64,000 bases of DNA from Octopus sinensis (GCF_006345805.1 NW_021825821.1:434001-498000); one strand, 5' to 3'; positions 9,580-59,223 are shown, numbered from the stretch's first letter. Notes: generated from the letters alone by a model not told the origin. Made by a program: numbers and translations.

Positions 9580-9903
9580 AAAATTTGGAACGAATTGCCG
9601 TCTGAAAGTATTCAGAAGTTAATTGATAGTATGCCTAAAAGGTCATACGAGCTATTTATTAATCGAGGATACCACACAACATATTAACGGTTGATTTTGT
9701 TAACTCTTTTTGTTAAAACCGGTTTTTTATTCACAAGCAAAAATTTAAATTTTTAAAATTTCCGCCGATTATTGAAATTTTTTAAAAGTAAAAAAGATTA
9801 TGCATATAATCAACTTCAAACTCTTTATTTCATTTAGAAAATTAATAGCTATACGCCAAAAAAAATTATTAACTGCAAAACCGGTTTTTTTCTACCAGCA
9901 CTG
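9580..9903 (+). mobile_element. Solo 3' end (transposase C-terminus plus TIR) of the Tc1 family seen at 41876-43330
   Basis: IWNELPSESIQKLIDSMPKRSYELFINRGYHTTY, then a TIR ending CTACCAGCACTG followed by TA. Near-identical to the end of the 41876 element. Confidence 0.85.
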
Positions 9904-10309
9904 TATGTGTGCAAATCAATATTTAGTAAAATGATTCGAATAAAAAATAAATGTCGTAACAAGCTCACAGCTCATAATTACTTGAGTCAACTGCTACGAA
10001 AATCTTCAACTTATTATTTTTCTTTTTAGTTCAAACACCTTTTGTTATCTTTTAACAAAAAGTTCAATAAAAACGAAATAAAAGTCTGATGCCATGATAT
10101 GCAATAGGCTGCAAACTTTTTAACGATCCGTGATAAAGAAAATGCTGGGCAACACTCAAATTATTGCTAAAAATTATAGCGGCTTCGGTAAGCAAATTCA
10201 AATATTGATTTGACCCCCACAATAAAAATGTTGAGAATAGTTAATATAGATCATCTAAAAAATTTAAAAAATTGCTTGAGAAAATTTATTTATTTATTAA
10301 ATCACAAAG

Positions 10310-23900: not shown

Positions 23901-23996
23901 AAAAAACTCAATTCTTTGCGGTGATCTCAATAAAAAAACCTACTATAGCTCTCTAACTAACCTAAGAATCAAAGAGGTGACCAAATTTTTTTGGTT

Positions 23997-26225
23997 AAAG
24001 ATATATTTTTATTTTTTTTGGAAACTTATTTATCTAATTACACACTCGATCCTCGAGAGGTGGACTGGCTATTGCAACGGTACAAATGGTCATAAGAGAA
24101 AACAATCTTTTATTCGTTTATAAAATTATATTAGCGTACATAGATTTACAAAAGTCTCAATAGTTTTTTTGCTATTGATAAAAATTGATTTTCGAAAAAA
24201 GTAAATGCGTAAACTCATATTCCTACCAGAATCATCAATCAAAAATCCTAGAGCAGCAGCTGAACTGGCCGATGGAAAGAAACGTGAAAATTTTACTGAT
24301 GGAGGGAATGGCAAAGTATTTGTTCCCTAAGAGTCGAGAGGTATTGGAAATAATGACCTTCTACCTCGGAATTTGCACCAGATGATTGAATCACTTATGG
24401 AAAGAGTTACCAGCGACCTATCTGATCAGAATAAAGTGATAAAATCTTAAAGTCTTCAACTTAGAGCTAAATTAAATTAATTAATTTTGTTTCGGGATTA
24501 TTACTAAGACAAATTTCTAATACAAATTGGAAAGTATAAAGTAAAAAAATATTTTAGACTTAAAAATTAATTAAAAACGTATAAAATAGCAGAAGAAAGA
24601 GTTAAAGATAACCACTGTACAAATAATTATATTTTACATTAATACCTTTGTTTCAAAATAGCAAACCTGCAAAGCAATAGTACCATAAATTGATAATGAA
24701 ACAAAATAACTGGTTAAAATTAATGAGTAACAAAATATTCGCCGTTTCTTGCATGACTATATATTTGAGTTTGTTTTTGGCAATGAATATGAATATTTTC
24801 GATTCAAATAATTTAACAACACCATATTTTGTGAGGTACAGTTTGATAACCATTTTTTTAATTTAGAACGCTTTTCTCATTAAAAAATGAGAGGGAATTA
24901 AATAATCCTGACAATGAATACCTATCGTTTGAATGTGGTGACATACTTCAAGTGATCAGCACAGATGACGATGATTGGTGGATAGCCTGCCACGTTAATT
25001 GTAAAAACGAAGAACCTCGTAATTTGCTAATTCCAAGCAATAATAAGTTATTTATATTAATTAAGAGCTGCAGAGCCATAAAAATGATGAATTTAAAAAA
25101 AGAAAATGCAAATTTGGAATTTTTATTCTCAACAGTAATTATTATTAAAATGTTTTTAGGTAACATGTGAAAATAATTGTTTCTGTGGTTCATTTCTAAA
25201 TTTGTCATGCAAAAAATCAAAACAACAGAAAATTTATTTAAAAGGTTTTATAATTTTATTAATTAAACAGAAACTTTAAAAAAAGATGCTACGACTGCTT
25301 ATCTCATCGTCAAGAAAGTCGTAAGCAGTAAGAAAAATAGTTAAATTTCAAGATCATAAAAGGCCGTTAATCATTTATGGACCTGAGATAAAAAGAATCT
25401 GGAAAGATTTGACATTTAGTGAACCGGAAAAATTCGGGATTCCAACAATTTGTAAAATTATGATTTTTATTTTTTAGATGCTACAGAGGGCAGAAGGAAA
25501 AATTTTACAGAAAACAAATACTTAAAGTATATCAGCAATCGGGAATTTGAAAATACGAATTTCATCGAAACCACAATATATGGAGAAAAAAAATATGGAT
25601 TTCCTCTATCAGAAATGTTAAAAATTCATAAAGTAATTTTATAATCCGAAGAATAGAAAAATAAAATTTGTTTATTGAATATTTTGCCGGAATCTGCAGT
25701 TAATTTAATGAACTATCGAATATACCCAATAATTCTATTTATAAAAATTCCGTTTTATAATACAGAAAGGTTTCGCTTTATTTAATTTGTCAGTGATACA
25801 AAATTTGATATTGAGGGTTTTATGGATCATTTTTTTATTTACGAAAAATATGCAGATTTATTTACAGGTAGACATTAATGTTTTATTATTTATAGAAATT
25901 TTAGAGGCGTCTGACTATAGGGATATGTTTAGAAAAATAAAGAAATCAATCGAAAAGCATTACAACAATGATATTTGGGTCTCTATAACCAGAATTTAGT
26001 TTTAAATAACCTTGGAATATTTTAATTAACAATATGTTTCTTGTTTGATTTTTTTATTTAAAAAAGCTAAATCAATGATTAATTTCGCTTGATTAGTTTA
26101 CGTTTATTCGATACAGCAAATTAAATAAATTTTAGTTTTCTATCTTTTTTCACAAAAAAAAATTTTAGCATCGAGTACAGAAAACTGACGACGTATTTGA
26201 TGCAAATATAATTTCATTATAAAAT
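23997..26225 (+). repeat. Segmental duplication copy 1 (paired with 38313-40372)
   Basis: Near-identical sequence by direct reading, except a replaced segment (24083-24335 vs 38397-38488) and scattered substitutions and indels. Both copies start with a CRE 3'-end fragment. Confidence 0.95.
24820..25999 (+). CDS. DLG-like MAGUK SH3-guanylate kinase module, copy 1; 5' part unresolved
   Basis: PYFV|RTLFSL, LSFECGDILQVISTDDDDWW and LLIPS (SH3); RPLII, F(I)ETTIYGEKKYG (GuK); C-terminus SIEKHYNNDIWVSITRI resembles the DLG IWVP ending. No PDZ recognised upstream. Confidence 0.7.
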
Positions 26226-37941: not shown

Positions 37942-38312
37942 AAAATTCATGAGATTTCATTCTAATTGTCATAATATAATAACGACATGCAACATATGCT
38001 ATTCTAAATTACAGGTAGTTTGATTTGATACAATAATGTTTTTTAATAGTTTACAATCTGTCGAATCATTGTCGTTAGCAGTGAGGTTAAATAATACAAA
38101 AAACTTTATAGAAACTACCTACTGTTAAAAATACAAAAATAAGAAGTCAATTTGCTAAATTTGTGAAATCTTGCTTGCCATTTTGTGGTTATTACTTTCT
38201 CAATCTTCTTTATGTTTTCAGATGTTTAAATACTTTAACTTTTTTTATTTTTTATTGGATTGTGATCTATTACAAAGAAATTTTGTTGATGTCGATTAAA
38301 TTGTTTTCGGTG

Positions 38313-40372
38313 AAAGATATATTTTTATTTTGTTTGGAAACTTATTTATCTAATTACACACTCGATCCTCGGGAGGTGGACTGGCTATTACAACGGTTAT
38401 CGATCGCCATTATCCGGGGAAACAGTTTGGCAATCCGCCAGACTACATATATATCGTAAACATGATAATGTGGTCACTAGCAAAAGCATTGGAAACAATG
38501 ACCTTCTACCTCGGAATTTGCACCAGATGATTGAATCACTTATGGAAAGAGTTACCAGCAACCTATCTGATCAGAATAAAGTGATAAAATCTTAAAGTCT
38601 TCAACTTAGAGCTAAATTAAATTAATTAATTTTGTTTCGGGATTATTACTAAGACAAATTTCTAATACAAATTGGAAAGTATAAAGTAAAAAAATATTTT
38701 AGACTTAAAAATTAATTAAAAACGTATAAAATAGCAGAAGAAAGAGTTAAAGATAACCACTGTACAAATAATTATATTTTACATTAATACCTTTGTTTCA
38801 AAATAGCAAACCTGCAAAGCAATAGTACCATAAATTGATAATGAAACAAAATAACTGGTTAAAATTAATGACTAACAAAATATTCGCCGTTTCTTGCATG
38901 ACTATATATTTGAGTTTGTTTTTCGGCAATGAATATGAATATTTTCAATTCAAATAATTTAACAACACCATATTTTGTGAGGTACAGTTTGATAACCAAT
39001 TTTTTTAATTTAGAACGCTTTTCTCATTAAAAAATGAGAGGGAATTAAATAATCCTGACAATGAATACCTATCGTTTGAATGTGGTGACATACTTCAAGT
39101 GATCAGCACAGATGACGATGATTGGTGGATAGCCTGCCACGTTAATTGTAAAAACGAAGAACCTCGTAATTTGCTAATTCCAAGCAATAATAAGTTATTT
39201 ATATTAATTAAGAGCTGCAGAGCCATAAAAATGATGAATTTAAAAAAAGAAAATGCAAATTTGGAATTTTTATTCTCAACAGTAATTATTATTAAAATGT
39301 TTTTAGGTAACATGTGAAAATAATTGTTTCTGTGGTTCATTTCTAAATTTGTCATGCAGAAAATCAAAACAACAGAAAATTTATTTAAAAGGTTTTATAA
39401 TTTTATTAATTAAACAGAAACTTTAAAAAAAGATGCTACGACTGCTTATCTCATCGTCAAGAAAGTCGTAAGCGGTAAGACAAATAGTTAAATTTCAAGA
39501 TCATAAAAGGCCGTTAATCATTTATGGACCTGAGATAAAAAGAATCTGGAAAGATTTGACATTTAGTGAACCGGAAAAATTCGGGATTCCAACAATTTGT
39601 AAAATTATGATTTTTATTTTTTAGATGCTACAGAGGGCAGAAGGAAAAATTTTACAGAAAACAAATACTTAAAGTATATCAGCAATCGGGAATTTGAAAA
39701 TACGAATTTTATCGAAACCACAATATATGGAGAAAAAAAATATGGATTTCCTCTATCAGAAATGTTAAAAATTCATAAAGTAATTTTATAATCTGAAGAA
39801 TAGAAAAATAAAATTTGTTTATTGAATATTTTGCCGGAATCTGCAGTTAATTTAATGAACTATCGAATATACCCAATAATTCTATTTATAAAAATTCCGT
39901 TTTATAATACAGAAAGGTTTCGCTTTATTTAATTTGTCAGTGATACAAAATTTGATATTGAGGGTTTTATGGATCATTTTTTTATTTACGAAAAATATGC
40001 AGATTTATTTACAGGTAGACATTAATGTTTTATTATTTTTAGAAATTTTAGAGGCGTCTGACTATAGGGATATGTTTAGAAAAATAAAGAAATCAATCGA
40101 AAAGCATTACAACAATGATATTTGGGTCTCTATAACCAGAATTTAGTTTTAAATAACCTTGGAATATTTTAATTAACAATATGTTTCTTGTTTGATTTTT
40201 TTATTTAAAAAAGCTAAATCAATGATTAATTTCGCTTGATTAGTATACGTTTATTTCGATACAGCCAATTAAATAAATTTTAGTTTTCTATCTTTTTCAC
40301 AAAATAAAATTTTAGCATCGAGTACAGAAAACTGACGACGTATTTGATGCAAATATAGTTTCATTATAAAAT
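38313..40372 (+). repeat. Segmental duplication copy 2 (paired with 23997-26225)
   Basis: Near-identical to copy 1. Retains a longer CRE 3' end (DPREVDWLLQRLSIAIIRGNSLAIRQ). Confidence 0.95.
38970..40146 (+). CDS. DLG-like MAGUK SH3-GuK module, copy 2; 5' part unresolved
   Basis: Same SH3 and GuK exons as copy 1. A 1-bp indel relative to copy 1 lies just upstream (near 38924), so at least one copy may be truncated or pseudogenised. Confidence 0.7.
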
Positions 40373-41422: not shown

Positions 41423-41875
41423 TAATGTATATTGAAAAAGAATAACAAGGAACTATCGATGTATGGAATTGATTTTAATTTGATTAAAAATTATTACATT
41501 TAAATTATTAAACAAAAATTCACACTCTGGTGTTTGATAATCTGAAATATTTTTTAGTTAATTTCTGGCTTACCCTGGTCCTTTGGTCAATAAAATGTCT
41601 TTAAATATTTTTAAATGTCCCAATAATGAATTTATCAAGTATTATAGCAAAATAATTCACGAAATATTTTTATTTAACAGTATATTTATTACTATTGTTT
41701 TACCATCTGTAATGTGAATACATTAATTTATTAGCTTTTTTAAAAAAAGGATTTAATGTGAGGTCAAATGATTTATCCAGACTGTTAAAATAATCGAGAA
41801 TTTATAGAAAAATGGGGATCCTGTAGCTTTTCTAGAGGATCTCGGTAGCAATCCTGAGAAAGAACTGCATAGATA

Positions 41876-43330
41876 CAGTGCTGGTGGAAAAAAACCGGTT
41901 TTAAGTTACTAAGTTTTTTTAGATTATAGCTATTAATTTTCCAAATCAAATAAAGAGTTTGAAGTTGATTATATGTATAATTTTTTTTACTTTTAAAAAT
42001 TTCAATAATCGGCGAAAATTTACAAAATTTGAATTTTAGCATGTGAATAAAAAACCGGTTTTAACAAAAAGAGTTAACAAAATCAACAGTTAGTATGTTG
42101 TGTGGTATCCTCGATTAATAAATAGCTCGTATGACCTTTTAGGCATACTATCAATTAATTTCCAAATATTTTCAGATGCCAATTCGTTCCAAATTTTCAT
42201 TAATTTGACTTCGAGATCAAGTTTATTTTTTGCAAGATCTAATGAATAATTTTGCTTCATCATGCTCCAAACATGTTCCATTGGGTTCATGTCTGGAGAT
42301 TGCGGAGCCCAATCAAGAATTGGAACTTTATTTTCTTCAAAAAACTTGGTTGGCAACGCAGATTGATGACAGGGAGCCAACTCTTGTTGGAAAGTGAACT
42401 GATTTAGTCCCATTTTTCGCGCCGAAACAAACAAATTATTCGTTATTACATTTATATATTTAGCGGAATTGAGTGTTTCATTAACAAAAACTAAATTGCC
42501 CACTCCTTGATAGAAGATACAGCCCCAAACCATAACACTACCTCCACCAAATTTTACTGTCGGTGTTATATTGCTCAATTCATAACATGAAATTTTTTTT
42601 CGATAACAGTATTGCCTTTTTCAATATGAAAAATCTGAAAAGATGCTTCATCGGCGAAAATAATAGTTTTCCATGCGTCATTGTTCATCCGAATAAAAAT
42701 TTTTGACAATTCACATCTTTTTATTATGTTTTTCTTCGAAAGCAACGGTTTACGTTGACATACTCTCCGAAAAGAAAATTTGAATTTAAATAAGTTCCAA
42801 TTGTCTTTCTACAGACACTCTTACCAGTTAAATGTTTTATTTCATTTCTCAACGTGTTAGAAAATTTTTTTGGATCGCACTCAATAAGATGTAATAGGAT
42901 TTCAATGTCTGTTTTCGGAAGCTTTTTGTGACGTCCGGAATCAGAAATCCTATCAGCAGTTCCATATTTTTTGAATTTTCGAAAAAAATCTCCGATTGTC
43001 GATTTTAAAGTATTTAGATGTTTTGCGATATCTTTGATCGTTCAATTTAACTCAAAAAGAGCAAGGATCTTTCCTTTAATTATTGAATTTAACATTTGCT
43101 TATAAAACTTAAAATTCAACAAATAAAATATCATTCAATAAATCAAACCGGTTTTTTATTCACACGCAAAAATTTAAATCTTCAAAATTTTAAACGATTA
43201 ATGAAATTTTTTATAAACAAAAAAATTATAAATCTAATAAACTCCAAAGAGTTCAATTAAGTTGGAAAATTGAATGCTATCTGCCAAAAAAACTTAGTAA
43301 CTGCAAAACCGGTTTTTTCCACCAGCACTG
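41876..43330 (-). mobile_element. Tc1/mariner DNA transposon (IR/DR type), defective transposase
   Basis: ~200-bp TIRs beginning CAGTGCTGGTGGAAAAAAACCGGTTTT, flanked by TA (41874-75, 43331-32). Transposase HTH-GR, VMVWGCI, QQELAPCH and SPDMNPMEHVW. Internal stop and frameshifts. Confidence 0.95.
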
Positions 43331-43809
43331 TATCCTCGGCACAACCAAGTCGATATTCCTGGAATAAAGCAATAAAATTTATACAAGAGGACCGTACGAA
43401 TAAAAAAATTTCATTAATAGATGTCTTATTTTTACTGATGTTTTTGATGTGGCAACCTCCACAAATCTGAAAGATAACAAAAATAACAGCAATTTTGATC
43501 AAAATATCTTCTTAGATTGCCGAAATCTCCGAGATATCCGTAATGTCGTGTTTCGATAGAATCATAATAATCGTAAGTTTAGTTATGACTGGCCGCACCT
43601 CAGAAAAGACTTAATTATTCGTATTACAATCAAACTCCTCTAAACTGATTCCTCTCAGAACCGGCAAAATTGTCCGGTATAGATGGGAAGCCGGTATATT
43701 GAACAAGTCATCGCCTTACTTTTATGATGGTTACACTGTTTCCGTTGACGATTAAAAACATTTTTTTCTCAAATATGAAAATAACCCTATTTCAGCCACT
43801 TTTATGAGG

Positions 43810-44000: not shown

Positions 44001-44284
44001 CAGGAACCTGATAGATGTAATTTCTAGTTTTCTTTCACCTTTGATTATTGACAATCATTAAATCTGGATGGCCAATATAGTATATTTTAAATCAGTTAAT
44101 TTTATTTTAAATTTGTCAGCCGTTGACACAGTTTTTAAATCCACATAAATTGGTATTATTGCCAACCAATGTAAAATATTTAACTCAACGAATCAAGACT
44201 ATTTTATTAGTATAATTATCAGGAAAAATGTCCATTTGTGTTAAACTGGTTAGTTATTTGGCTCAGATTTAATTTGCAGTGCAC

Positions 44285-45264
44285 TCAAGGGTGGGAGCTA
44301 AATTTGAATGCAGGAAATAAACCCGGTCTTTCACAAACAAAAGGCAACCTCCTGTCGCAATCATGGGTGTCCCACACTCCTTCATTTCCTAAAATAGTTC
44401 CACATTTTCTGTATTTATCATTGACAAAATCATCTTTAAAATTTACGAATTTCTAAATTAGAATTTACAAAATTACCTGTCTACGGTTGTACGAATCGTG
44501 AAAGTCTTTTCCTTCATAATGAAACTTGTTGAGTCCAAAATAGGCACGTGGAACTTTTTTTGGTGTAAGAAATTCGTCTAAACGTGAGTATGCAAATGAA
44601 AACCAAGTATAAATTTATTTATTACTGGTGAATCGATGACCGCCAAATCTCCACCAATATCACGACAGTAATGACGGGCATCTGAATATTTCTCTGGATA
44701 TTTTTTTTCCAAAGAGTAGCATTTTTTGTCAAGACAGATGTTATGTTCTGAAATTAAAAACAAAGTGTAACTAGGGAATTCGCATAAAAATGCCATTTTC
44801 GTTGAACAAGTATTGTCGTTCCATTCCCCATTGGTGTGGTACATGTGAACGCAGTTTTCATTTCCGTTATTATTACTTGGTTGTCCTTTGTGCCAGTTAA
44901 AAAATGTCTGACAAATAAATAACGCATCACACTTGTTGATGTCCGTAACTGTTAACGAACTGGCCCTCTCTCTTCATGTCATTTATTCCAATGTAAATGT
45001 TGTCATAGTATGGTCTATAGAAATTATCTTTGCATTATAGTTTTAGAACTACAAACCAACAAGGAATTTGTTGGTCTTAGAGTCAGGGACAACCGCCAAG
45101 TCCCCTCCAATAAATCGACAATACTTTTCAGCGTCGAAAAAACCCATTTTATGTTTAAACAAAGTGTAGCACTTTGAATTGAGGCACATTTGACCCCCTG
45201 GATTTATTAGTGAGTAACTACCTTCCTCTGTCCATGCCGTTAACAAAATTACAAGTAAAAACAT
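44285..45264 (-). CDS. Secreted protein with two tandem C-type lectin domains, copy A
   Basis: Signal MFLLVILLTAWT. CTLD1: CYTLF...AEKYCRFIGGDLA, IYIGIND, FNWHKGQPSNNNGNENCV, WNDNTC, FLCE. CTLD2: CYSL...ARHYCRDIGGDLA, WDTHDC, FVCE. Stop TGA at 44285. Introns 24-29 nt. Confidence 0.9.
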
Positions 45265-45752
45265 TTTCTACACCTCTTTTTCAGGGTTTATATATTCTTG
45301 TACACACCTGTTGTAACCTTTGATTTATTTCAATATGTATACAGCTGTCAATTGAAACATTTGTTCGAGGACAATATTTCTAAATTTAATAATTGTTTAG
45401 ATATTTTACTAGCAATGAGTCACAAGTTGATGAATAAAAGATATTTTCAATGTTGGGGAGTTGAATTTGAAATCACTACAGTCAGGGCCCTCTAAACCGA
45501 TTCCTATTAGGACCTACAGAATTGTCCGGTATAGAAAGGAGGCCGGTATATTGAAAAAGTCATTAAATTTATTTATAACGAGAAATGAAATAATAAAATT
45601 AATAGAATTCTGTCATTAAGGATTGCCTCGTATTTAGCTTCAATTCAGCAATAGCTTTATTGTTTAGATAGATCAGTCTGTTGACGGGATCGAGTAATAC
45701 AGGGTCTTAACTTTAAGCAAGCAACAAATTTGGTCTAGAATTTGTTTATATT

Positions 45753-47505
45753 TGTCGTAAGTTATAATGTCTAAACCCGTTCTAAGTGTCCGGAGTGATA
45801 AATCGGATTTATCACTCCAAATCATCTAAATGCATAGAAAACTAGAAAGAAAAAAGTAAGCAATTGGGTGGCTAAGGGAATTGTCGAGGGCCTGAGGGTC
45901 AGCTCAACGATGCCGCGCTGCGTATTGAGTGGCAGAAATTCTTAATGATTACTTTTGTTAATTCAATAATTTTTTAATTATTAAAATTTGAAAAAATTAA
46001 CTCTGTTAACAAGAACGCGGAAATTAACAAAGAAATTTTCATCAATCAGGTGATTGAGCGTCATATCAGGTGATTGAGCGTCATAGTAATGAACATAAAA
46101 ATGTAAGATTACTCTATGCGAATTTTTTTCACATTAACCTCAATTAATTCAATTCAAATCCTTTAGTTTTATAACTATTTGTTGATTGCTAAAAAGACTA
46201 TAAAATTAGATATTGACTAAATCGAAAACCGAAACTAAACATAAAAATAGATAATAAAATTTACAAACATTGTCCTAAACAGTCTCGTATAATATAAATT
46301 CAGTTTTCAACAGAGTCTGTATTCAACCGCTACATGTGATTCTGTGCAAACTCTTCCGGTCCTTATTTATGTGACGAAAAGGGTTTAGACGAGATGACCT
46401 TCTTCCAGTATAGAAGCAACGTCTCCTATGTCGAATAAAACAAAGCAAAAGTTACTTATATTATGAAACAATTTTTAAAGAAACATACAATTGATTGAAT
46501 ATAAAATGAAAATGTAATTTATATCGGAGTTATTTTCCAATCATCAAAAAGTTTTGAAACTTCTTTGTTGCGGAATTCCTTTCCATTGTCCGAATGAAGA
46601 TAAATTGGAAGACCGACAGTCTGGAATAAACTCTCAATTGCATTATAGATGCTTTGTGATGTTTTATTCTCTAACGCGAATGACCATGCAAACTTTGTGT
46701 ATGCATCGATGACAGTAAGTATCCATTTAAAATTGTCATTATTTGCAGAATACCGCCTTAGATCTATACAGTCGGCGATAAATCTTTCGTATTTTTTTTC
46801 CACAGAAATCATTCTGATATTTTCACAAGTAGTTAAAGAGTTAAATGATTGGCACGGTATGCATTTTGATACAAAATCACGAATTATACATTGTTGAATT
46901 CCAATATATTTTTGAGAAATTAGATAACACATTTTATTGAACCCAGGATGTCCTTCATTATGTTCATCACAAAGAATAGATTGAATCCTTTCATGTTCAA
47001 AAGGACATATAACAATTTTATGTGTTCCTGATTTGGAATAAGAGAATAATTGATCGTCTGCAAAATGAAGAGTTTTACACTTTCTTCGAATTGTTCGCTT
47101 TTTGGTTTCTGTCATTCCAGGTTCATATTTTTTAGACAATAGATATAGTAAAATAGAATCATATTCTCCTTTGCTATTGATGTGTATCGAGCGCACCATG
47201 AACAGTTTAAAAAACGTGAAACTGTTAAATAAAAATTTAAACTTTTTAATATAAAAATCCAAAAAAATATAGACATTTTATCCCCAATTCGACCCATTTC
47301 CTATCTAATTCAACAAAAATAAAATTTCAATTTTTTTGCCTACCAGAAAAACATGCGGGTACATTTTACCAATAATTTCATCCGTATCCCCGTATAGGAC
47401 GTTATTTAACCAAAATTAAGCGACACAAATAAATTTATTCCCAAAATAAATCCGATTTATCACTCCGGACACTTAGAACTGGCCCGGACGCTATAACTTA
47501 CGACA
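45753..47505 (-). mobile_element. Ginger-type (Gypsy-integrase-related) DNA transposon with TIRs
   Basis: TGT...ACA termini, ~60-bp imperfect TIRs (TGTCGTAAGTTATA...GTTCTAAGTGTCCGGAGTGATAAATCGGATTTAT) and 5-bp TSD ATATT (45748-52, 47506-10). ORF 46519-47262 has an HHCC zinc finger plus rve core (ADCIDL, VIDAYTK, LHSDNGKEF). No RT; the 3' part is decayed. Confidence 0.88.
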
Positions 47506-47509
47506 ATAT

Positions 47510-48700
47510 TTGTGGATGTTAATTTCTCTATATGTTTTGGCTTTGTCTGCTTATCAGAATCTGAGTCACTGTCATTATCTTCAGAAGCTGAGACTGTTTG
47601 GCATTGCTCAACTAGGGATGATTCCCAATCTTTGGGATTTTCAGTGAGTAATTCCAAGTCTAAGTTGATAAATTCTACTTCTGTCATTGGATTATCGACT
47701 AGTCTATTCATGAGGGGTATAAAAAGTAAATTTTTTTAGGATTGTGGTTTATATAATATATTTTGACCGGAATGCCACAGTTATTAAATCTGAAAGAGAT
47801 TGTGTTTGATTTCACGTCAATTCAAACCGTGCTAAGCTGTGCTAATCTACCGGATACCATCCAAGAGAGAAATTTTTGGATGTTATCGATTTATTCATTC
47901 TTTTAATTTTCTTCTTTAAGGACAATTCGCAGCGTAATCGTTTTCTTTGCGAGGCTATCATCTTTTGGGTTTTGATTTTTTGTCAAGTTGTTCGCAATAT
48001 CGTTGTTTGTAATTACAATAATAGTCTGTTGTTCGAGTTCCTCATTAAAAAAGACAACCTAAAGTTGTGAACTTTAAATCATCATTGGAAATTTTCATAA
48101 ACTGTCAAAAAACTATATTTTTTTATATGGTAATGATTTTTTGCCGAAATCTAGATTTGACGGGTGTGCTATATTTCTCACAGAAGAATTAAAGTTATCC
48201 GAAATTTCTTATGATTGTGCCTTTTTAGTTGATAAAAAATAATTTGGATAGTCACACTGTACGTTGACTACCAGAAAATGCAATATTACTACTTGTGTTA
48301 CCTGGTGATGTTAGAGTTTGGAAAGAACAGAATATCTTCCAGGGGTCCACTACTCACAATCTTCTTTTTACGGAAATTACATCTAAACAGCGCGCAATTA
48401 CGGTGTAAAAGCATCATATTCTAAAAACTTATTTATTCAAGTATTGTCGGAATGGAACCCAAACTGTGGCTCACTCAAATATGATATTCGTCGGCTTTTT
48501 GTGCCAAATATGACATTCTTTCGTTATTCGATGGCTCCTTTCAATTCGGGGTCAATAAATAACTCTATAAGTTGTAAGCTCTTGTTGGTATGAATAATCC
48601 ACGTGGAATGTGTGGACCTTGTCTCACGATTGTACAAATTAGAGTCAGAATCACGAATTAGAGAATTGACATTTTTTGCAATAATTTGTTTTCCTTTTGT
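47510..48700 (-). other. Possible uncharacterised multi-exon gene with an acidic C-terminal region, divergent from FGFR1OP2
   Basis: Several short open stretches with plausible GT-AG boundaries and an acidic tract (SEDNDSDSDSD, ORF 47460-47711) that runs into the Ginger end. No consistent splice model or domain found. Confidence 0.25.
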
Positions 48701-48791
48701 TTTGTAATAAATTTAAGGATAATTTTAAATTAATTTTGTTTCAAAATAGCATCTTAAAATTCTTTTGTGACGCTAATATACTGGAAAATAA

Positions 48792-49429
48792 ATGGAGAGA
48801 AAAATCAACCAAATGATTTCAAAACTAAAAATAACTACTGAAAATCAAAAAAAATGTCAGGAAAGGGTTCGAACGTGGTCGCAGAAGTATACTGATCTAC
48901 TAACAGATTTTGATCGACCGCGACAGGTCGTAGTAAAGGAGACTAATACGATAGATTTCAGAATCTGATCTTATTTTAATTTCAAAAGCGGGAGGCAGTC
49001 AATGGGAGACACTCCTCTCTGATTTTCCCTATGAAAACAAGACAATTAAATTTCTTGAGAATGAAAATAAAGAAATGCAATGTTTTATTGCCGAATCCAC
49101 TGCAACCATCGAGACTGTAATGAAAGACTACAGGGAAAAAATGATGTCATCATTTTCCCAAAAAGTTCCATATAGTCCAGATAATGAAGTAAATTCAAAT
49201 ATTATCGAGGTCCTATTTTTTACTAATTAAATTAATTATTAAGAATAATTAATATTTAATTATTTAGAATATGAATAATTCAAATATTAAGAGTTTGCTA
49301 CAAGTATCTAAGGATTATTTGAAATGTGAAGACAACAGAGCACTTTTTCTCCAAGCAGAGATGAGAAGACTGGAAGTTGAAAATCAAAATTTGTATCTCA
49401 TGGCACAGACAGCCTCAGAGTTTTTTTAG
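48792..49429 (+). CDS. FGFR1OP2: FGFR1OP2/SIKE family coiled-coil protein (STRIPAK component), 3 exons
   Basis: MERKINQMISKLK...RPRQ|(28-nt intron)ISESDL...ENKTIKFLENENKEMQCFIAESTATIETVMKDYREKMM...|...EMRRLEVENQNLYLMAQTASEFF. Matches the family segments ENxxIxxLxxENKE...IMxKYRE and LExENxxL. Confidence 0.75.
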
Positions 49430-49511
49430 TACTAATTCGTTCAATGTTTAATAATTAATGTTTATTGAGTTCAGAAGTTTTATTTTAATTTAATTATTAC
49501 CTATCTTAATA

Positions 49512-51215
49512 TTATACATTGGGTTTTTTGGTTTTGGCGGTTTTTGGTGGAAGTTTTTCGTTTATTCTGTCAATTTTTTTTGCGTCTTTAAAATTCTTGA
49601 CATCGATTGTATTCTGTATTCCCATCAAGGCAAGTGCTAAAAATTAAAAAAATAATGAACCAGCTTTTATTCCTTCACGACCTTTAGCAAATGTCCCTCT
49701 GGGTATCAGCCCGTCGGACGTCAAACCCTTCAGCTGTACTATACACTCACTTTCCTCACTAAAAAATTAAACACAAATATTACCGAAGCAAAGAAAATGT
49801 AAGAGCCAGTTTTCCGACAGCTTTGATCTTGTTTTTAATCACTTCTTTCCTATTTTGATCGATTTTAGAATCTTTTTTAATTCTAAGAAATACCTATAAC
49901 TGTTTCGTCAATCATTTCATTTTCAGAGCAAACTTTAAGCATTTCTGAGAGCATTTCTATGATTTTTTCGACTGCAAATGGAAGGGACCACGTGATTGCG
50001 TTCATAAAATTTGGTAAACAGTAAGGGTGTGGGCTTGCTTTGAATTGTTTTACCGTAAGGACGTTGTCTTTATATTTAATTACCGCGGCTACATAAACCA
50101 CAAAGAGCTTACCTCGATTTCCATAAACGTCCAAATAGTTTGGTGCAGAAAAAACGGTGATTAGTGATGGAAATCCTGTTTTGGGATTTTTTGAGTACAT
50201 TCGATAACTTTTGTTAACATTATAAATATATATAACCCCGCGTCTTGAGCCTCGTGTGCTCGAATGACAGACAAAATGTTATTTTGGTCTAAGAAGGCGC
50301 ATGTTGCTCCAAATGAAAAGGAATATGAACATCCTCTGACAAAGTTGAATGCAAAGCTTGAATTTTTTAGGTTTATGTCGTATTGCTCCATCGGATCCGC
50401 CCACATAATGTCACAAAGAGGACCAGAAGAAGGAGTCTCTCTGAATCGGTCAATCTTGCTTTAAATATATTAATCCAACAGATTCGAAGTCATCAAGGGT
50501 TTTGATGTCCGGTGACAGGCCCCCGTGGATGCAAAGGAACTTATTTTGGACGAGTGCTGCAATTGGGAGGTGGTCGAAGGACTCCATACATGTATCGTAA
50601 AGATCGAGAGAATATTTCATTAAACCTATTATGATCAACAAAATTATATTTACATTCTCGTTTAAATGTAAAATAGTTAGTCAAATGACGACATTCGTGG
50701 TTTCCACGAAGTAAAATAATTTGATCTGGCCTATTTACCTTGAGAGCCCAGAGAAGAAGAACACACTATAAATCAATGTATCGATTGGAAAACTTCAATC
50801 GAAAAAAAGCCACGGTCTACGTAGTCGCCTAAAAAAAGATAATTATTGGTTAAAGGGTTCCCAGAGATTTCAAACAAATTTATCAAATCGTAATACTGTC
50901 CATGTATATCTCCACATACTACAAATAATGAGGCATTCATACTGGTTAAAGACTCTCCACTGATTGCGACCAAATTGGGCTCTTTTTTGAAACAATTTGT
51001 TGCCATTTTAATAATTTTGATAGCAGCACTCTCCGTGAGCCTACCTTCCGAAATTTGGTGTTTTTTTAATAGTTCGTAGTTTAAAGATTGGGTTTTCTCG
51101 TCGTAGAGTTCCTCAAAGTTAAGTCTTTTTGTATTTATCAAAGCATTTTCTATAAAGTGTATTTAAGGGTGAAATGATTATTTTATTTGAATGTATAAAT
51201 ATCAAAACTGAGCAT
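49512..51215 (-). CDS. PPP3CA: Calcineurin A (PP2B catalytic subunit)
   Basis: [71 protein letters not shown] (CnB binding), [10 protein letters not shown] (CaM binding), DRINEKLPP (autoinhibitory). Stop at 49512; first mini-exon (ATG 51215) tentative. Confidence 0.97.
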
Positions 51216-52598
51216 TGTGCTTTTTTTCGTAGTCATAATTTAATAAAAAATGATCGTTTTAACGATTATAAATAAAATAGTTTTTGACTGATTTATCAAT
51301 TATTATTCGTTAATTGTAAATATTCATTGTCAATAAAAATGTGAAATTTATCGTTTTGAATTTATAAAAAAATAAATTTTCCATGATAAAAAGTACTCTC
51401 AAATATCAAATCAAATATTTTTCCAATAATAAAAAGCACAATTTTCAGTATTTAATGAGGAATACGTGGCGTTTTATTTTTTACAAGTACATACTTTTTT
51501 GACAGTTCTTACGAATGAAATATTTAAGGTACATTTTATACACCTTTATTATATTAGTGCATCTGGGTAAACATTTTTAATTTTAAAATATATTAATTTA
51601 AATTTCAGCGATTCAAAATTTGAGTTTAATTTTTTCAGGTTAAGAAAGATTCCAAAAAGTTCCTTCAAGACAGTGTTTCTTCTGGCTTATATAAAATCAT
51701 TATTTATATATTTTGATTTTTCGATTATTGAAATAAATGTGTTTCGAAATATATTTCAGGAATTGGAAAAATTGAAAATAACAACCTTGATTGCCAATTT
51801 GTGAATTTTGATCTTAGAATGACGATTTTTGTTAAATTATGAATCTTGATTAAAAAATTTTAATCTAAAATTTAAAAAAGAAAACTTTTAAAGGAAAAAT
51901 ATATTAAAGTAATAAAACAATTAAAAATTTTAAAAATTATTTGAAATTGTTAGAAAATAATTAAGAATTCACTGTTTCATCGACAAAAAGACATTATTTT
52001 GAAATTTTCGACTCCTTTGCTCTGGTTTTCAGTTTATAGATTGTCAAATATGCAACTGATCGATTTTGTAATAAAATATTTTATTTTCCAGTTAATTATT
52101 TATCCATGACAAGCCTTACTTAACTCAGCTAAAAACCCCTCAAATATCAGAATGAAAAAATATTTGAATGTGGTCTTTAAGACAACCTATTTATGTATTT
52201 TCCAAATTAGTGTATTTCAATATTCAGTATGCATTACAAACAAAGTGGAATATAAAAATAAACCTAATGCACCTGACTAGTTAACAATAACTCCTAATAT
52301 TATACAACGATTCTATGATAAAAAAATTACCTCAATTTTGACGTTCTTTTTTGATATAATATCCATGTTTAATACTTTATTTGAAAGGGTTCCAAAGAAA
52401 AAAATCAATTTAAAAGGGTTCCGTAAAAATTTTAAAGTTGGGAACCATAGTTCTAAATAATTTATTATTTGAGTTTATCAACTAAAACAAATGACACATA
52501 AATCATAAAATATGTGTTCATTCTAAATTTATAAAATTGTAAACCTAAATTGCTCAATTTACCTCTAACTCAAGTGAAAAAACAATAATATATTTTTA

Positions 52599-52831
52599 TT
52601 TTGTTACATCATCCTGCAATCTTGTCTAGTGTTCTTTTTTATTTCTTTTTTAATAAAATGTTGATTAAAAAAATTAGACCGTATTACATAGCAAAGATTC
52701 CGGATTAATGCGATCGCCGAGCACCATAAACAAGCTTATCTATAAAGCTATATCATAAGTAATAATATGTTCTGATATAATTCCGGATTCCTTTTTGCAG
52801 ATATCAAATTTAAGGAACGATACTTAATTTT
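52599..52831 (+). repeat. ~232-bp direct repeat, copy 1 (paired with 58804-59034)
   Basis: TTTTGTTACATCATCCTG...GGAACGATACTTAATTTT recurs 6205 bp downstream with roughly ten differences. Confidence 0.95.
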
Positions 52832-52833
52832 TC

Positions 52834-54927
52834 AAACCCTAAAGTTGGCAAGTGACAACATAAATATATTCATAATCTAACCCTAACCCAAACCCTAACG
52901 TTGGCAAGTGACAACAAAATATATTTAAAATCTAACCCTAACCCTAACGTTGGCAAGTGACAACAAAATATATTCAAAATCTAACCCTAACCTTAACCCA
53001 AACCCTAACGTTGGCAAGTGACAACATAAATATATTCAAAATCTAACCCTAACCTTAACCCAAACCCTAACGTTGGCAAGTGACAACATAAATATATTCA
53101 AAATCTAACCTTAACCCAAACCCTAACGTTGGCAAGTGACAACATAAATATATTCAAAATCTAACCCTAACCCAGGGGTGTCAAACATGCGGCCCGCGGG
53201 CCGCATGTGGCCCTCGAAAGACATAGGTGCGGCCCTCAGCGTACTTTACCAAACATAAGTGCGGTCTGATTTAATGGCTATAAAATGCAAAAAATTATTT
53301 TTTATTTTTTACATTTAATTAAAATTTTTAATTGTATTGTATTTTTAAATCATGTTTGTTAATGTCACGTGCCTCTTCTGGAATAAAAAAGAAACGCTCC
53401 TTGAAAGATGAACGGAGAGTGTTTCAAGATAAATGGGAACTTCTCTATTTTTGCACAATGGTTGATGGAAAAATACATTGTTTTATATGTAACAAGTTTA
53501 TCGCTATACCGAAAGAATACAACCTAAAGAGGCATTATTAATCTAATCATCTATCATACAATTATTTCGAAGGTATTAAGTTGCTTATTAATCAAGAAGG
53601 TCCAATGCATGTTTCAAAGCTAAATGAATTGCGAAAAAATTTATCTGCGTTACAAACTCATTTCACAAAAAATCATAATCGAAGTACTGCATTAGTCACT
53701 GCAAGCTATGAAATCAGCAGAATGCTTGCAGTAAATGGAAAATCATATTGTGATGGTGATTTCATCAAGCAATGCCTTGTAAAAACAGCGAATATTATTT
53801 GTCCAGACGACGCCCACTTGTTTAAAGATATTTCATTCACAAGAAATACTGTTGCCGAACACATTAATGAAATGCCATTGAATTTGAAACACCAATTAAA
53901 GTCTGATTTGTTAAAATTCGAATATTTTTCAATTGCAATCGATGAAACAGTCGACGTCGTTGGAATTGCACAATTAGAAATCTTTTTTAGAGCGTGTGCT
54001 TCAGATTTTAATATTTATGAAGAATTTCTCGAACTAGTACCAATGCACGATACTACTACAAGTAAAGATATCTTTATAAAACTACTACAAATTCTCTTTG
54101 AATATGGGTTTGATTTAAAGAAGCTTGTATGTTTATGCACTGATGGTGCTCCGAATATGGCTGAACGACATGCTGGCGTTGCCGCTAAATTGCGAGCTGA
54201 AATAGAAAAGGTAAATCCCGGGTCATCATTTGCTCATTTTCATTTTATTATTCATCAGCAATATTTGTGCTCAAAGATATTAAAAATGGAAAATACCATT
54301 AGTTTGGTCACGAAAACAGTAAACTATATTAGAGGTCATCCCCTCAACCACCGGCAGTGTTTCCAATGCAGATGAAAGTTTACAAATGGAACTATTGGAA
54401 ATCCAATCAGATTATATACTTAAAGCTAAATATTTGGAGGTTGGAATACCTGCTTTGGAGGTTGGAAAGTTTAAAAACTTTAAAAAGTTGTCAATCCTCT
54501 GGAAGCAACTCTCACCAAAATTAAAGGGCGATAATTGAATAATTTAGTTTCTCTTATTTTTGTTATTCATCATAATAAATATCAGAACTAATCTTCCCTT
54601 AATGAGAAATTATTATAAATGCGGCCCTCGAAGCAAAATTGTTACAAAATGCGGCCCTCAAAGCGAAATGAGTTTGACACCCCTGCCCTAACCCAAACCC
54701 TAACGTTGGCAAGTGACAACAAAATATATTTAAAATCTAACCCTAACCCAAACCCTAACGTTGGCAAATGACAACATAAATATATTTAAAATCTAACTAT
54801 AACCTTAACCCAAACCCTAACGTTGGCAAGTGACAACATAAATATATTCAAAATCTAACCCTAACCTTAACCCAAACCCTAACGTTGGCAAGTGACAACA
54901 TAAATATATTCAAAATCTAACCCTAAC
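52834..54927 (+). repeat. Minisatellite of 10 units containing telomeric CCCTAA hexamers, split by a hAT
   Basis: Core AAACCCTAACGTTGGCAAGTGACAACA(T)AAATATATTYAAAATCTAACCCTAA. Six units at 52834-53172 and four at 54686-54927. Periods 49-62 bp, differing mainly by 6-bp hexamer steps. Confidence 0.95.
53173..54685 (+). mobile_element. Non-autonomous hAT (Buster/SPIN-type) DNA transposon
   Basis: TIR CAGGGGTGTCAAAC / GTTTGACACCCCTG, TSD CCCTAACC (53165-72, 54686-93), subterminal GCGGCCC repeats. GTF2IRD2-like transposase fragments (CFIC...KEYNLKRHY, SIAIDETVD, LCTDGAPNM, HFIIHQ); C-terminal part deleted. Confidence 0.96.
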
Positions 54928-55406
54928 TCGAAATTAAATGATGTTTCTGCTGACGATTCTTCAGACATTTTTGACAAAAAATTGGAAACTTTTTTGGCCA
55001 ACCGGTGTTTGCCTCAAGCATTCATATCCTCCGGGAATATCCCGATTGACGTTTCCTTAATTTGATTGTATTCGTTAATATTTATAACGTAACCCTTAAA
55101 CCCAGATATTCAATATTTAATACCTTTTCTGCGGTTTCCATAGAAACACGTAAAAGGACTGGCTGCCCATAGCGACATAGTCGCCCATGTGACATAGTAT
55201 ATTTTAAATCAGTTAATTTTATTTTAAATTTGTCAGCCGTTGACACAGTTTTTAAATCCACATAAATTGGTATTATTGCCAACCAATGTAAAATATTTAA
55301 CTCAACGAATCAAACATAGACAATTTTATTAGTATAATTATCAGGAAAAATGTCCATTTGTGTTAAACTGGTTAGTTATTTGGCTCAGATTTAATTTGCA
55401 GTGCAC

Positions 55407-56386
55407 TCAAGGGTGGGAGCTAAATTTGAATGCAGGAAAAAAACCCGGTCTTTCACAAACAAAAGGCAACCTCTTGTCGCAATCATGGGTATCCCACACT
55501 CCTTCATTTCCCAAAATAGTTCCACATTTTTTGTATTTATCATTGACGAAATTATCTTTAAAATTTACGAATTTCTAAAGTAGAATTTACAAAATCACCT
55601 GCCTACGGTCGTACGAATCGTGAAAGTCTTTTCCTTCATAATTAAACTTGTTGAGTCCAAAATAGGCACGTGGAACTTTTTTTGGTGTGAGAAATTCGTC
55701 TAAACATGAGTATGCAAATAAAAACCAAGTATAAATTTATTTATTACTGGTGAATCGATGACCGCCAAATCTCCACCAATATCACGACAGTAATGACGGG
55801 CATCTGAATATTTCTCTGGATATTTTTTTTCCAGAGAGTAGCATTTTTTGTCAAGACAGATGTTATGTTCTGAAATTAAAAACAAAGTGTAACTAGGGAA
55901 TTCGCATAAAAATGCCATTTTCGTTGAACAAGTATTGTCGTTCCATTCCCCATTGGTGTGGTACATGTGAACGCAGTTTTCATTTCCGTTATTATTACTT
56001 GGTTGTCCTTTGTGCCAGTTAAAAAATGTCTGACAAATAAATAACGCATCACACTTGTTGATGTCCGTAACTGTTAACGAACTGGCCCTCTCTCTTCATG
56101 TCATTTATTCCAATATAAATGTACTTATAGTATGGTCTATAGAAATTATCTTTGCATTATAGTTTTAGAACTACAAACCAACAAGGAATTTGTTGGTCTT
56201 AGAGTCAGGGACAACCGCCAAGTCCCCTCCAATAAATCGACAATACTTTTCAGCGTCGAAAAAACCCATTTTATGTTTGAACAAAGTGTAGCACTTTGAA
56301 TTGAGGCACATTTGACCCACTGGATCTATTAGTGAGTAACTACCTTCCTCTGTCCATGCCGTTAACAAAATTACAAGTAAAAACAT
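55407..56386 (-). CDS. Secreted double C-type lectin, copy B
   Basis: Same exon structure as copy A with scattered substitutions (LIDPVGQ vs LINPGGQ); no disabling lesion seen. Lies in a duplicated block (44077-45599 vs 55194-56651 plus 58735-58805). Confidence 0.9.
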
Positions 56387-56651
56387 TTTCTACACCTCTT
56401 TTTCAGGGTTTATATATTCTTGTACACACCTGTTGTAACCTTTGATTTATTTCAATATGTATACAGCTGTCAATTGAAACATTTGTTTGAGGACAATATT
56501 TCTAAATTTAATAATTGTTTAGATATTTTACTAGCAATGAGTCACAAGTTGATGAATAAAAGATATTTTTAACGTTGGGGAGTTGAATTTGAAATCACTA
56601 CAGTCAGGCCCCTCTAAACCGATTCCTTTTAGAACCTACAGAATTGTCCGG

Positions 56652-58726
56652 GGCGATATCGTGTTTTAGCGTCTTAAAATCATAAGGGACCAATTTTGAT
56701 TAGAAATCGCAAATAAATTAATATTATTATATTATTTTTTAAAAATTATTATAATTATCAAAATAATTATTATCTGCAACGCTTTAACAGTATTTTTATA
56801 TTTTAGAACATTTTTCGCATTACACCATCAGGCCCAACGATCAGATGGGGAGATTGTTGAGGGTCTTTTAGTTACTGTAATCACAGCATCCAAACAACAC
56901 CACGTGAAGGTGACCCACATCGTTGTTTCTGGAAAAAATCTGTTATCATTCCAATTCTGAAGCCCAACAAAGACCCCTGCGACCCCGCCTCGTTCAGGCC
57001 AATCTCACTCATCTCTGTCGTATCAAAAATCCTCGAAAAATTTGTCCTGAATTCAATCTACCCTTTCCTCACTCTATCAAAGTCACAGCATGGCTTCCGT
57101 CCGCAGCACTCAACAACTACACACCTATCTTATCTAACAAGATTCATCGCAGACGGATTTAATAACTACTCCCCTCCCCATCGAACTATCCTGGCATCAA
57201 TTGATATCAGTAAGGCTTTTGACCGAACTTCACGACATGTCCTGAGCTCAAAAATTCACTCTTCTCCTATTCCCCATCATCTGAAAATCTGGCTGTGTAG
57301 CTTCTTATCTGGTAGACTGGCTCAGACAAAATTCGGGTCAAAAAACTCCCGATTCCGCTACTTACCTAATGGGGTCCCAGCTCTCTCCAGCTCTCTTCAA
57401 TCTACACCTCAGTGATATGCCTACTAATTCGGAAACATTACTCCTCTCGTACGCTGACGACATAGTGATTGCTTCAAGAAACAATTCCATCAAAGCTGCA
57501 ACAAACTCACTCCAAACTCATCTAAACTCTCTGACCAAATGGCTAGGATCTAACCATATGACTCCTTCTGCGTCCAAATCGTCCATCACTGTTTTTACAT
57601 CTGATAAAAGACAATTCAACCTAAACCCAGTCCTCTATGTGGCCGGCGAAATAATTCCTGTCATAAAAAACCCGAAAATCCTTGGAGTCGTATTCAATCA
57701 ATGCCTATCTTTCACGCAACACGTGGAGCTCATTTCCACCAAAGCCAAACGAAAACTGAATGCACTACGTGCCTTATCTGGACAAACTTACGGCCAAGCC
57801 AAAGAATATCTCACTTTGGTTTACAAACAATTTGTCAGAACATCTATGAACTATGCTAGTCCAGCATGGTCATGGAACTTGTCTCATTCAAACCTCCAAA
57901 AACTCCAAAGAATCCAAAACTCAGGCTACGCACAATAACTGGCTGTCTTGCATCCACTCCCATCGATCATCTTCATTGGGAGTCCTGCATCCTTCCGGTC
58001 GATGACCATTTGACGATGAGAGGACTCCAATTCCTACAGGAAATACAAGATTCTTCTCATCCAAGTCACAAAATCTCTATTCCAGAAAACAAAAGACACA
58101 TCATTTCTACTCTGGCCGATCAATGTAGATGTCTATCAAAAAGCAAATTTTGGACTATATCTATTTTTGGGCACTCAACTCAGAAACGATTATCTGCAGC
58201 AAAGAATCTCGATCAGACTTTAAAAAAACATCAATTGATTGGGGAAACTTTTTACGTGATGTATGCGTAAAGTGGGTCGAGGACCATCCTTGTTCTCTCG
58301 GTGGAATTAATTCAGAAACTATGTTGCCAATTGTCGTAGAAGTGGATGAAACAAAATATTTACATCGAAAATACGCAAGAGGTACCTGGCACGAAGGGCA
58401 TTGGGTTGTTGGTGGAAAAGAGAGGGGCAACCCTAGGAATATTTTTCTGGTCGAAGTTTCTGATCGGAGTCGAGACACGTTAATAACTATTAATTCTCAG
58501 TATCTTTTGTCTTAATAATTCGAGTTTTTCACTGTTTTCATGTTTTACTAAGTTGCTGTAAAAAATGTAGTTTTAAAAAAATTTTAATTTAGGGTTGCCA
58601 CAGTATTGTACATATAAATTTAATTATAATAATTTTTAAAAAATAGTATAATAATATTAATTTATTTGCGATTTCTAATCAAAATTGGTCCCTTATGATT
58701 TTAAGACGCTAAAACACGATATCGCC
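56652..58726 (+). mobile_element. Merlin (IS1595/ISXO2-like) DNA transposon, non-autonomous, containing a LINE fragment
   Basis: ~105-bp TIRs beginning GGCGATATCGTGTTTTAGCG and 8-bp TSD TTGTCCGG (56644-51, 58727-34). The empty site is visible in lectin block A (~45522). Partial transposase 58129-58515: IDWGNFLRDVC, VVEVDETK, RKYARG, WVVGGKER. Confidence 0.93.
56820..58125 (+). mobile_element. APE-type LINE RT fragment inside Merlin
   Basis: WKKSVIIPILKP, FRPISL, QHGFR, IDISKAFD, LSPALFN, SYADD, ILGV and YASPAW, with frameshifts. Confidence 0.9.
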
Positions 58727-58803
58727 TTGTCCGGTATAGAAAGGAGGCCGGTATATTGAAAAAGTCATTAAATTTATTTATAACGAGAAATGAAACAATA
58801 AAA

Positions 58804-59034
58804 TTTTGTTACATCATCCTGGGATCTTGTCTAGTGTTCTTTTTTATTCCTTTTTTATAAAATGTTGATCAAAAAATTAGGCAGTATTACATAGCAAAGA
58901 TTCCGGATTAATGCGATCGCCGAACACCATAAACAAGCTTATCTATAAAGCTATATCATAAGTAATAATATGTTCTGATATAATTCCGGATTCCTTTTTG
59001 CAGATATCAATTTTAAGGAACGATACTTAATTTT
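58804..59034 (+). repeat. ~232-bp direct repeat, copy 2
   Basis: See 52599-52831. This copy joins directly to the end of the duplicated lectin block and is followed by the NRBP upstream region. Confidence 0.95.
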
Positions 59035-59223
59035 CCGAGCACATGCTAGCATCCTTTGTGCACATTTTTCTACTGAACTTTTAAAGATTAAATTTTTATA
59101 ATTTAATTATTGCTAAAATAATAAAAATTAATTAGTGTAGTTAAAATTACATATTAATTTGAATATATAATATTTGTGGTCTGTTTTTATGTTGAGCTTT
59201 TGTTATTTTACAGTATCATAAAA

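Follow-up and report, generated by a model that had tools for sequence, protein, structure and literature searches.

Organisation of the duplicated lectin region

The window analysed in this study, a stretch of 64,000 nucleotides deposited under Octopus sinensis and free of N gaps, contains a C-type lectin gene in two copies together with a short non-coding sequence, X, which also occurs twice. The parent lectin block, L1, lies at 44077–45600 on the minus strand and was defined by a Pfam Lectin_C match, a gene model, and self-BLAST to the second block. It is followed by U (45601–52597, 6,997 bp), which is found only between L1 and X and is missing between the second copies, and then by X itself (52598–52831, plus strand, 234 bp), which is DNA of single-copy type and is taken as the parent copy. 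The parent segment L1-U-X covers 44077–52831 (8,755 bp). Beyond X come a satellite array interrupted by a hAT transposon, a single-copy spacer, the derived lectin block L2, which is split by an element with terminal inverted repeats (TIRs), and the second copy of X, named X′ (58803–59034, plus strand, 232 bp). From the end of X′, a further 189 bp lead to the ATG (59224) of a gene encoding an NRBP-like pseudokinase.

The lectin gene of L1 is complete. It is encoded on the minus strand by six exons (45264–45053, 45014–44933, 44907–44772, 44747–44604, 44577–44477, and 44452–44285), and its product is a secreted-type protein of 280 amino acids with two C-type lectin domains (CTLDs). The five introns are 38, 25, 24, 26, and 24 bp long, and all of them are GT-AG introns in frame. 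The N-terminus of the protein is hydrophobic, and the open reading frame (ORF) of exons 3–4 matched Pfam Lectin_C with an E value of 4.5e-8. CTLD1 and CTLD2 resemble each other, and the protein is a member of the C-type lectins. No close homologue was found among 5.8 billion proteins; the best match (P0001) proved to be bacterial. The L1 block takes in 336 bp upstream and approximately 208 bp downstream of the gene. A 75-bp sequence is present on both sides of the L1 gene (43637–43711 and 45489–45563, 85% identical), and no second lectin gene was found beside the outer copy at 43637–43711.

The exons of the L2 gene are those of L1 displaced by 11,122 bp and run from 56386 to 55407 on the minus strand. 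The ORF and all of the five splice sites are kept. Of the changes between the two coding sequences, 8 are synonymous and 11 non-synonymous, which corresponds to proportions of synonymous (pS) and non-synonymous (pN) differences of 0.050 and 0.016 and a pN/pS of 0.32. Therefore, both lectin copies look functional; they are intact, and the comparison suggests constraint. The major part of L2 (55194–56651, minus strand) is 97.6% identical to L1, and its distal upstream part (58727–58805, minus strand), which corresponds to 45522–45600 of L1, is 98.7% identical. The original prediction, made from the sequence of this region, had described a full duplicate of the lectin block. The recurrence of the 44077–45600 block held, but the copy is not an uninterrupted one because an element of 2,075 bp splits L2.

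X and X′ are direct repeats with 95.7% identity, eight substitutions, and two 1-bp indels (self-BLAST E value of 9e-103), and the predicted pair of direct repeats of about 232 bp is thus real, with lengths of 234 and 232 bp. In the self-comparison of the window, L and X are each present exactly twice with their order and orientation kept, and U is present once. Before the insertion of a transposable element, L2 and X′ together measured 1.76 kb, and they are collinear with and in the same orientation as L1-U-X without the roughly 7-kb U. The simplest parsing is that L2 and X′ form a collinear copy of L1 and X lacking U, which replaces the predicted gene-carrying cassette as a unit. A search with a word size of 7 gave no further copy of X, the satellite, or the spacer within the window. 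Rfam and tRNA scans of 43–60 kb gave no match, so that X as a short interspersed element or a tRNA-derived element was ruled out. The satellite core and a conserved 30-mer of X had 0 matches in metagenome scans. An 8-mer within X (CCGAGCAC, 52716–52723) recurs at 59035–59042 as the first eight bases past X′, while X′ itself carries a mutated form, CCGAACAC. No longer similarity was found there, and the recurrence is probably due to chance.

The array next to X lies on the plus strand in two blocks, 52833–53172 and 54686–54927, for which Tandem Repeats Finder gave a period of 62 with scores of 424 (span 52933–53172) and 394 (span 54689–54927), respectively. A unit-by-unit listing resolved ten units of 49–62 bp. 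Each unit is composed of a unique core of 37–38 nt (GTTGGCAAGTGACAACATAAATATATTCAAAAT) and two to four degenerate telomere-like hexamers (CTAACC, CTAACC, TTAACC, CAAACC, CTAAC). The longest perfect (CCCTAA)n anywhere in the window is two units (12 bp). When the hAT element and one copy of its target-site duplication (TSD) are excised, a regular 56-bp unit is restored and the array becomes seamless, with 574 bp and ten units. The region had been described as headed by a telomere-like CCCTAA array and as a possible product of a break healed with telomeric sequence. It is instead a compound 62-bp satellite with at most two perfect hexamers in succession, and the hexamers are repeated along with the 38-nt core. 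A telomere added at a break at the X end would read TTAGGG there. The C-rich strand of the array follows X on the plus strand, which argues against telomere healing of X, and neither an uninterrupted hexamer run on unique DNA nor a G-strand 3′ of a healed end is present at this site. The array shares with interstitial telomeric sequences and subtelomeric satellites the degenerate CCCTAA-type hexamers inside a longer tandem unit. In contrast to telomere-associated satellites, however, it is only 574 bp long, lies inside a gene-containing contig, never runs beyond two perfect hexamers, bears no sign of telomerase addition, and gives no indication of a former chromosome end. The satellite may be resident intergenic DNA between the parent and the copy. 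The spacer that separates it from L2 (54928–55193, 266 bp) is single-copy in the window and corresponds to the predicted unique sequence of about 260 bp.

The hAT element (53173–54685, plus strand, 1,513 bp) was inserted in the satellite. It has a perfect 14-bp TIR (CAGGGGTGTCAAAC) and an 8-bp TSD (CCCTAACC) at 53165–53172 and 54686–54693. Its ORFs gave a weak match to Pfam DUF4371 (E value of 6e-4, below the Pfam cut-off) and SPIN-DOC zinc-finger matches, and they are 94–97% identical at the amino acid level to FAM200/GTF2IRD2-like hAT proteins bearing PF14291, PF27073, and PF27046. The short TIRs, the 8-bp TSD, and the hAT-type transposase homology of the DUF4371/FAM200 type place the element in the FAM200/GTF2IRD2/ZBED5-like branch of the hAT superfamily. 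Separate copies, each with its own TSD, are found in three loci of the assembly GCA_006345805.1, namely L001 (VCDQ01002209.1), L002 (VCDQ01011782.1), and L005 (VCDQ01001076.1). The copy in the window is internally about 0.5 kb shorter than those elsewhere and is therefore non-autonomous. Unlike the superfamily to which it belongs, it has an internal deletion; it came in later as a passenger and is not the cause of the duplication.

The second element lies in L2 at 56652–58726 (2,075 bp) and has TIRs of 106 bp (99%) and an 8-bp TSD (TTGTCCGG) at 56644–56651 and 58727–58734. It carries a reverse-transcriptase fragment of a long interspersed nuclear element (LINE), matched by Pfam RVT_1 at 57369–57938. 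An assignment as a Merlin/IS1595-like element found no Pfam support, and it is kept here as a TIR element with an 8-bp TSD. Its target site is 258–265 bp upstream of the L2 start codon, and positions 45522–45529 of L1 represent the empty site. The 45489–45563 copy of the 75-bp motif is also present in L2, where the 2,075-bp element was inserted inside the motif. Both elements have clean 8-bp TSDs and the empty site is kept in L1; thus, both arrived after the duplication. Approximately 3.6 kb of the 6.2-kb X-to-X′ interval is later transposon insertion, of which the original prediction made no mention, and the X-to-X′ period is 2,601 bp without both transposons against 6,205 bp as it stands. 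Another transposon, a Tc1/mariner-like element of about 1.46 kb (41872–43334), lies just upstream of the L1 block. It has 190-bp inverted termini (CAGTGCTGG...) and is flanked by TA; related pieces are found at 9577–9913, and near-identical copies are present in L005 at 5943–8628.

Junctions and origin of the duplication

L2 runs straight into X′, with …AATAAAATT directly followed by TTGTTAC…. At this junction, the match with L1 extends as far as …AAAATT and the match with X begins at ATTTTG…, which leaves a 3-bp overlap, ATT, and L1 and X each depart from the L2/X′ sequence exactly at the overlap. The other novel junctions show 0 bp of microhomology between the spacer and L2 and 0–1 bp between X′ and the NRBP side or between X and the satellite. 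Homeology between the ends of L and U as a guide of the L2/X′ junction was considered and set aside, since its score of 16 was reached by 36% of random AT-rich pairs. The L pair differs at 31 of 1,524 positions and the X pair at 8 of 232 (Fisher p 0.23), and p values of 0.19–0.45 were obtained when the X pair was compared with the non-coding or synonymous sites of L. The comparison has low power, and the equal divergence of the two pairs is consistent with one event.

Three novel junctions are needed if L1 and X are the parents. The opposite polarity, in which the L2-X′ arrangement would be ancestral, needs four junctions and two separate insertions, plus a 7-kb piece with an essential-type gene landing between L and X, and is unlikely. 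U holds an intact and apparently single-copy calcineurin A gene and is therefore regarded as native DNA rather than an insertion into an L-X unit.

The locus is probably the product of a local segmental duplication that did not involve a transposon and was later decorated by two DNA-transposon insertions. The copies are direct and collinear, the junctions are blunt or carry microhomology, the hallmarks of a transposable element are absent, and the pieces are of equal age, as is found after break repair or template switching. The layout, the order of the insertions, and the integrity of both genes are evident from the sequence; how the duplication arose, and in which direction, is what we infer from it. 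The parent L1-U-X would have been copied as L2 and X′ without U, and the copy would have been placed directly upstream of the NRBP-like gene. One route would be a single, complex event of break repair or replication in which templates were switched, either by fork stalling and template switching (FoSTeS)/microhomology-mediated break-induced replication (MMBIR) or by multi-template synthesis-dependent repair, which would give a duplication-normal-duplication (DUP-NML-DUP) pattern. The other would be a near-tandem duplication followed by end-joining deletions that removed the redundant calcineurin-containing middle and, in a variant, also a second satellite copy. Template switching had been listed among the possible routes in the original prediction, and with three junctions of 0–3 bp microhomology it is one of the two best-fitting mechanisms. 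The view that no canonical transposon made the duplication is likewise borne out, because LTR (long terminal repeat) features are lacking and the duplicated DNA is not framed by a TIR or a TSD.

The order of the pieces next to the NRBP-like gene could have arisen in two ways. The satellite and the spacer may have been resident between X and the NRBP-like gene, with L2 and X′ inserted after the spacer. Alternatively, X may first have adjoined the NRBP-like gene, after which the satellite, the spacer, and L2 would have been inserted and X re-copied. The former is slightly favoured because every donor is then local, within 11 kb, whereas the latter requires an unseen donor for 841 bp. Afterwards, the hAT element entered the satellite and the TIR element the upstream region of L2. 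The locus now has a second C-type lectin gene, which has two domains and is still under constraint.

DUP-NML-DUP segmental duplications are known from human copy-number variation loci such as PLP1 and MECP2, where they are attributed to FoSTeS/MMBIR template switching. The present locus is similar in that the non-adjacent L and X are duplicated while U between them is single-copy, and in that a direct collinear copy lies within about 11 kb of its parent with 0–3 bp microhomology and without transposon hallmarks. In contrast to those loci, the mechanism is here deduced from the end product, which tandem duplication and deletions would give equally, and one junction may involve a satellite-containing stretch of 841 bp. 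The locus can also be compared with tandem duplication and deletion in an expanding lectin family, since a complete small gene was copied nearby with its flanks and both copies are under purifying selection. However, the second copy is not adjacent here, and a further piece of 232 bp, taken from a site 7 kb away, is attached to it. Several points weigh against a local segmental duplication as set out above. Parsimony is what decides both its direction and whether a single complex event or a series of simple ones took place, and the 841 bp of satellite and spacer may be either resident or foreign. Besides, an AT-rich microhomology of 3 bp carries little weight as evidence, the longer homeology at the junction is no better than expected by chance, and the arrangement is known from one assembly only.

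Those 841 bp are the starting point of another explanation, in which the X-to-X′ interval is foreign filler (satellite and spacer, perhaps subtelomeric) together with the L copy, and X was copied a second time as the fork returned upstream. X and X′ flank the insert in direct orientation, which is the arrangement that a fork would leave on returning upstream of its point of departure; the 64 kb contain the satellite and the spacer once only, and the three junctions show 0–3 bp microhomology. Nevertheless, a donor locus that is not seen would be needed, and 841 bp is unusually long for templated filler. The array is also not a telomerase product (two perfect hexamers at most, with the 38-nt core co-repeated), and it is oriented as at a left chromosome end with respect to the DNA to its right, and not as a telomere capping X would be. 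This explanation is judged unlikely, though it is the one among the alternatives that deserves some weight. An assembly artefact, in which diverged haplotypes or a chimeric join were placed in series, appears quite improbable. A divergence of 2–4% could be allelic if the animal is heterozygous, and dicyemid DNA, to which the window probably belongs (see below), is reportedly hard to assemble. On the other hand, only L and X are doubled, not segment A, U, or the NRBP side; the flanks of L2 are unrelated to those of L1; each copy has private transposon insertions, and N gaps are absent. The pN/pS of 0.32 with 11 amino acid changes fits paralogues. The doubling confined to L and X, the flanks, and the insertions argue against a simple haplotig artefact.

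A circular route was also considered, by which a circle with X, the satellite, the spacer, and L was integrated at X, or a module was excised via X and X′. The geometry permits it, and the organism is probably a dicyemid, a group with reported circles. Developmentally regulated extrachromosomal circles were reported in dicyemids, according to the passage of PMC6543705 that cites Noto et al. 2003, and chromatin elimination in dicyemid somatic cells has been reported. However, the product would be formally identical to that of a near-tandem duplication and has no specific signature. The circles reported for Dicyema are unlike a gene-bearing unit of 2.6–6.2 kb: the circular contigs of Dicyema sp. 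have a median of 702 bp in the long pool, the mitochondrial circles measure 344–1605 bp, and the conserved domains are only those of mitochondrial genes (PMC6543705). Moreover, the divergence of about 4% between X and X′ and the two transposon insertions indicate that the region has long been stably chromosomal. It is thus very improbable that the circular route was taken, or that X and X′ mark a module that arrived at this site as a circle or leaves as one. If true, this would be the first sequence-level case of a gene-carrying circle re-entering or leaving a dicyemid chromosome.

Capture by a Helitron or Helentron, by a Pack-type TIR element, or by an LTR-like element with X as its LTR is the least credible of all, close to negligible. 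The insert does start with TC after T, and tandem arrays are common within Helentrons. However, TC is present at 52832–3 only, the 3′ ends read ...AAAATT (plus strand) or ...TTTGA (minus strand) without the CTRR end on either strand, and no hairpin was found within 30 bp of the junctions. Pfam gave no Rep/helicase match for ORFs in the interval, no gag or pol lies in the unit, and no second copy was found in the window or in L001, L002, and L005 (about 63 kb for the three related loci). The predicted Helentron-like carrier is contradicted by the lack of the CTRR 3′ end, the subterminal hairpin, the Rep/helicase ORF, and a second copy. A Pack-type origin is opposed by the position of L2 outside the hAT TIRs and of the other TIR element inside L2. 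As for an LTR, X starts with ATTTTG and ends with AATTTT instead of TG...CA, and its 5-bp flanks (TTTTT and CCGAG) form no TSD, as had been predicted for these repeats. Neither gag/pol nor a primer-binding site or polypurine tract was found, and the interior consists of the satellite, the hAT element, the spacer, and a host lectin gene. A single reverse-transcriptase fragment is present in the X-to-X′ interval and lies in the TIR element with its own TSD, and the sequence preceding X′ is L, in common with L1.

Neighbouring genes and other repeats

U contains an integrase-bearing TIR element, plus-strand ORFs at 48792–49429, and the calcineurin A gene. The integrase-bearing element (45752–47506) sits 151 bp from the L1 breakpoint. 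It has inverted repeats of 61 bp (89%) and an ORF of 247 amino acids with rve and H2C2 (Integrase_H2C2) domains, and it could represent a DNA transposon of the Ginger type or part of a retroelement. The calcineurin A gene lies on the minus strand from about 51236 to about 49520 and is complete, with a phosphatase domain (Pfam Metallophos), a calmodulin-binding segment, and the C-terminus. Its introns are very short, and its ATG is likely at 51236. The position of this ATG, 1.36 kb from X, left unsupported the idea of X as a shared calcineurin/NRBP promoter, duplicated so that neither gene would lose it. Among 3,654 homologues, the best identity is 57%, and the identity to any sampled animal is about 55%. 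This divergence points to a very fast-evolving and unsampled lineage. The protein collection contains nothing nearly identical to the lectin or to calcineurin A and therefore lacks the source genome; six ORFs of the window, looked up as exact sequences, had no match in it either. On the other side of X′, the pseudokinase starting at 59224 has HGNL in place of HRDL and a WNK-family kinase fold, the comparison with PDB showing the WNK relationship only. HGNL and the N-terminal motif match NRBP. The best match of its exon 1 in an exhaustive representative search was 64% identical. Elsewhere in the window, a direct repeat of 1.9 kb is found at 24343–26225 and 38488–40372, 14 kb apart and 99% identical, with a shorter paired piece just upstream of each copy (23983–24081 and 38298–38397). 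The pair represents either two very recent transposon copies or a further local duplication.

Source organism and meaning of the duplication

The window is probably from a dicyemid. Introns of 24–38 bp are known among animals only from myxobolid myxozoans (PMC13644364) and Dicyema japonicum (PMC6736024), and Octopus sinensis is the host of D. japonicum. The intron lengths, the divergent calcineurin A, and the repeats in common with Octopus sinensis contigs make a dicyemid the best guess. The nucleotide comparison covered three of four such contigs, all except VCDQ01008848.1 (L006), and gave identities of 96–98% for the hAT element, 93–97% for a Tc1-like miniature inverted-repeat element, and 84% for a LINE-like repeat. 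The dinucleotide signature of the window is shared by L001 and L002, with a CpG observed/expected ratio of 0.9–1.0. Gene calls are sparse on the four loci, and L002 harbours at 16243–16950 an enoyl-CoA hydratase gene that is not annotated and has introns of 28 and 29 bp. Of octopus proteins, only four from O. sinensis, and none from other species, belong to this hAT group. Transposon transfer between host and parasite was considered for the 94–97% match and dropped in favour of contamination, on account of the 28–29 bp introns in a housekeeping gene, the shared repeats, and the same dinucleotide signature. Judged by these features, VCDQ01002209.1, VCDQ01011782.1, VCDQ01001076.1, and VCDQ01008848.1 look like dicyemid contamination annotated as octopus (XP_029654859, XP_029656048, XP_029657782, and XP_029656447). 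This by-product may be more useful than the duplication itself, since at least three contigs of GCA_006345805.1 share transposon families of the window at 84–98%.

The X-to-X′ interval is best read as an ordinary satellite with two later transposons and a local segmental duplication, which is a common kind of gene duplication and no new mobile or circular element. Its interest would rise with evidence of excised or circular forms from population or long-read data, for which the sequence itself gives no reason. Among the gene families that have expanded in Dicyema japonicum are clusters of mannose-receptor-like (multi-CTLD) C-type lectins (PMC6736024), and a recent lectin duplication in the window would fit that expansion. 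An entire 1.5-kb gene with ultra-short introns was copied locally and appears to have been kept under selection, and two transposon insertions serve to date its duplication in relative terms. The locus is a well-resolved example of the growth of a small lectin family in a very reduced, repeat-rich parasite genome.

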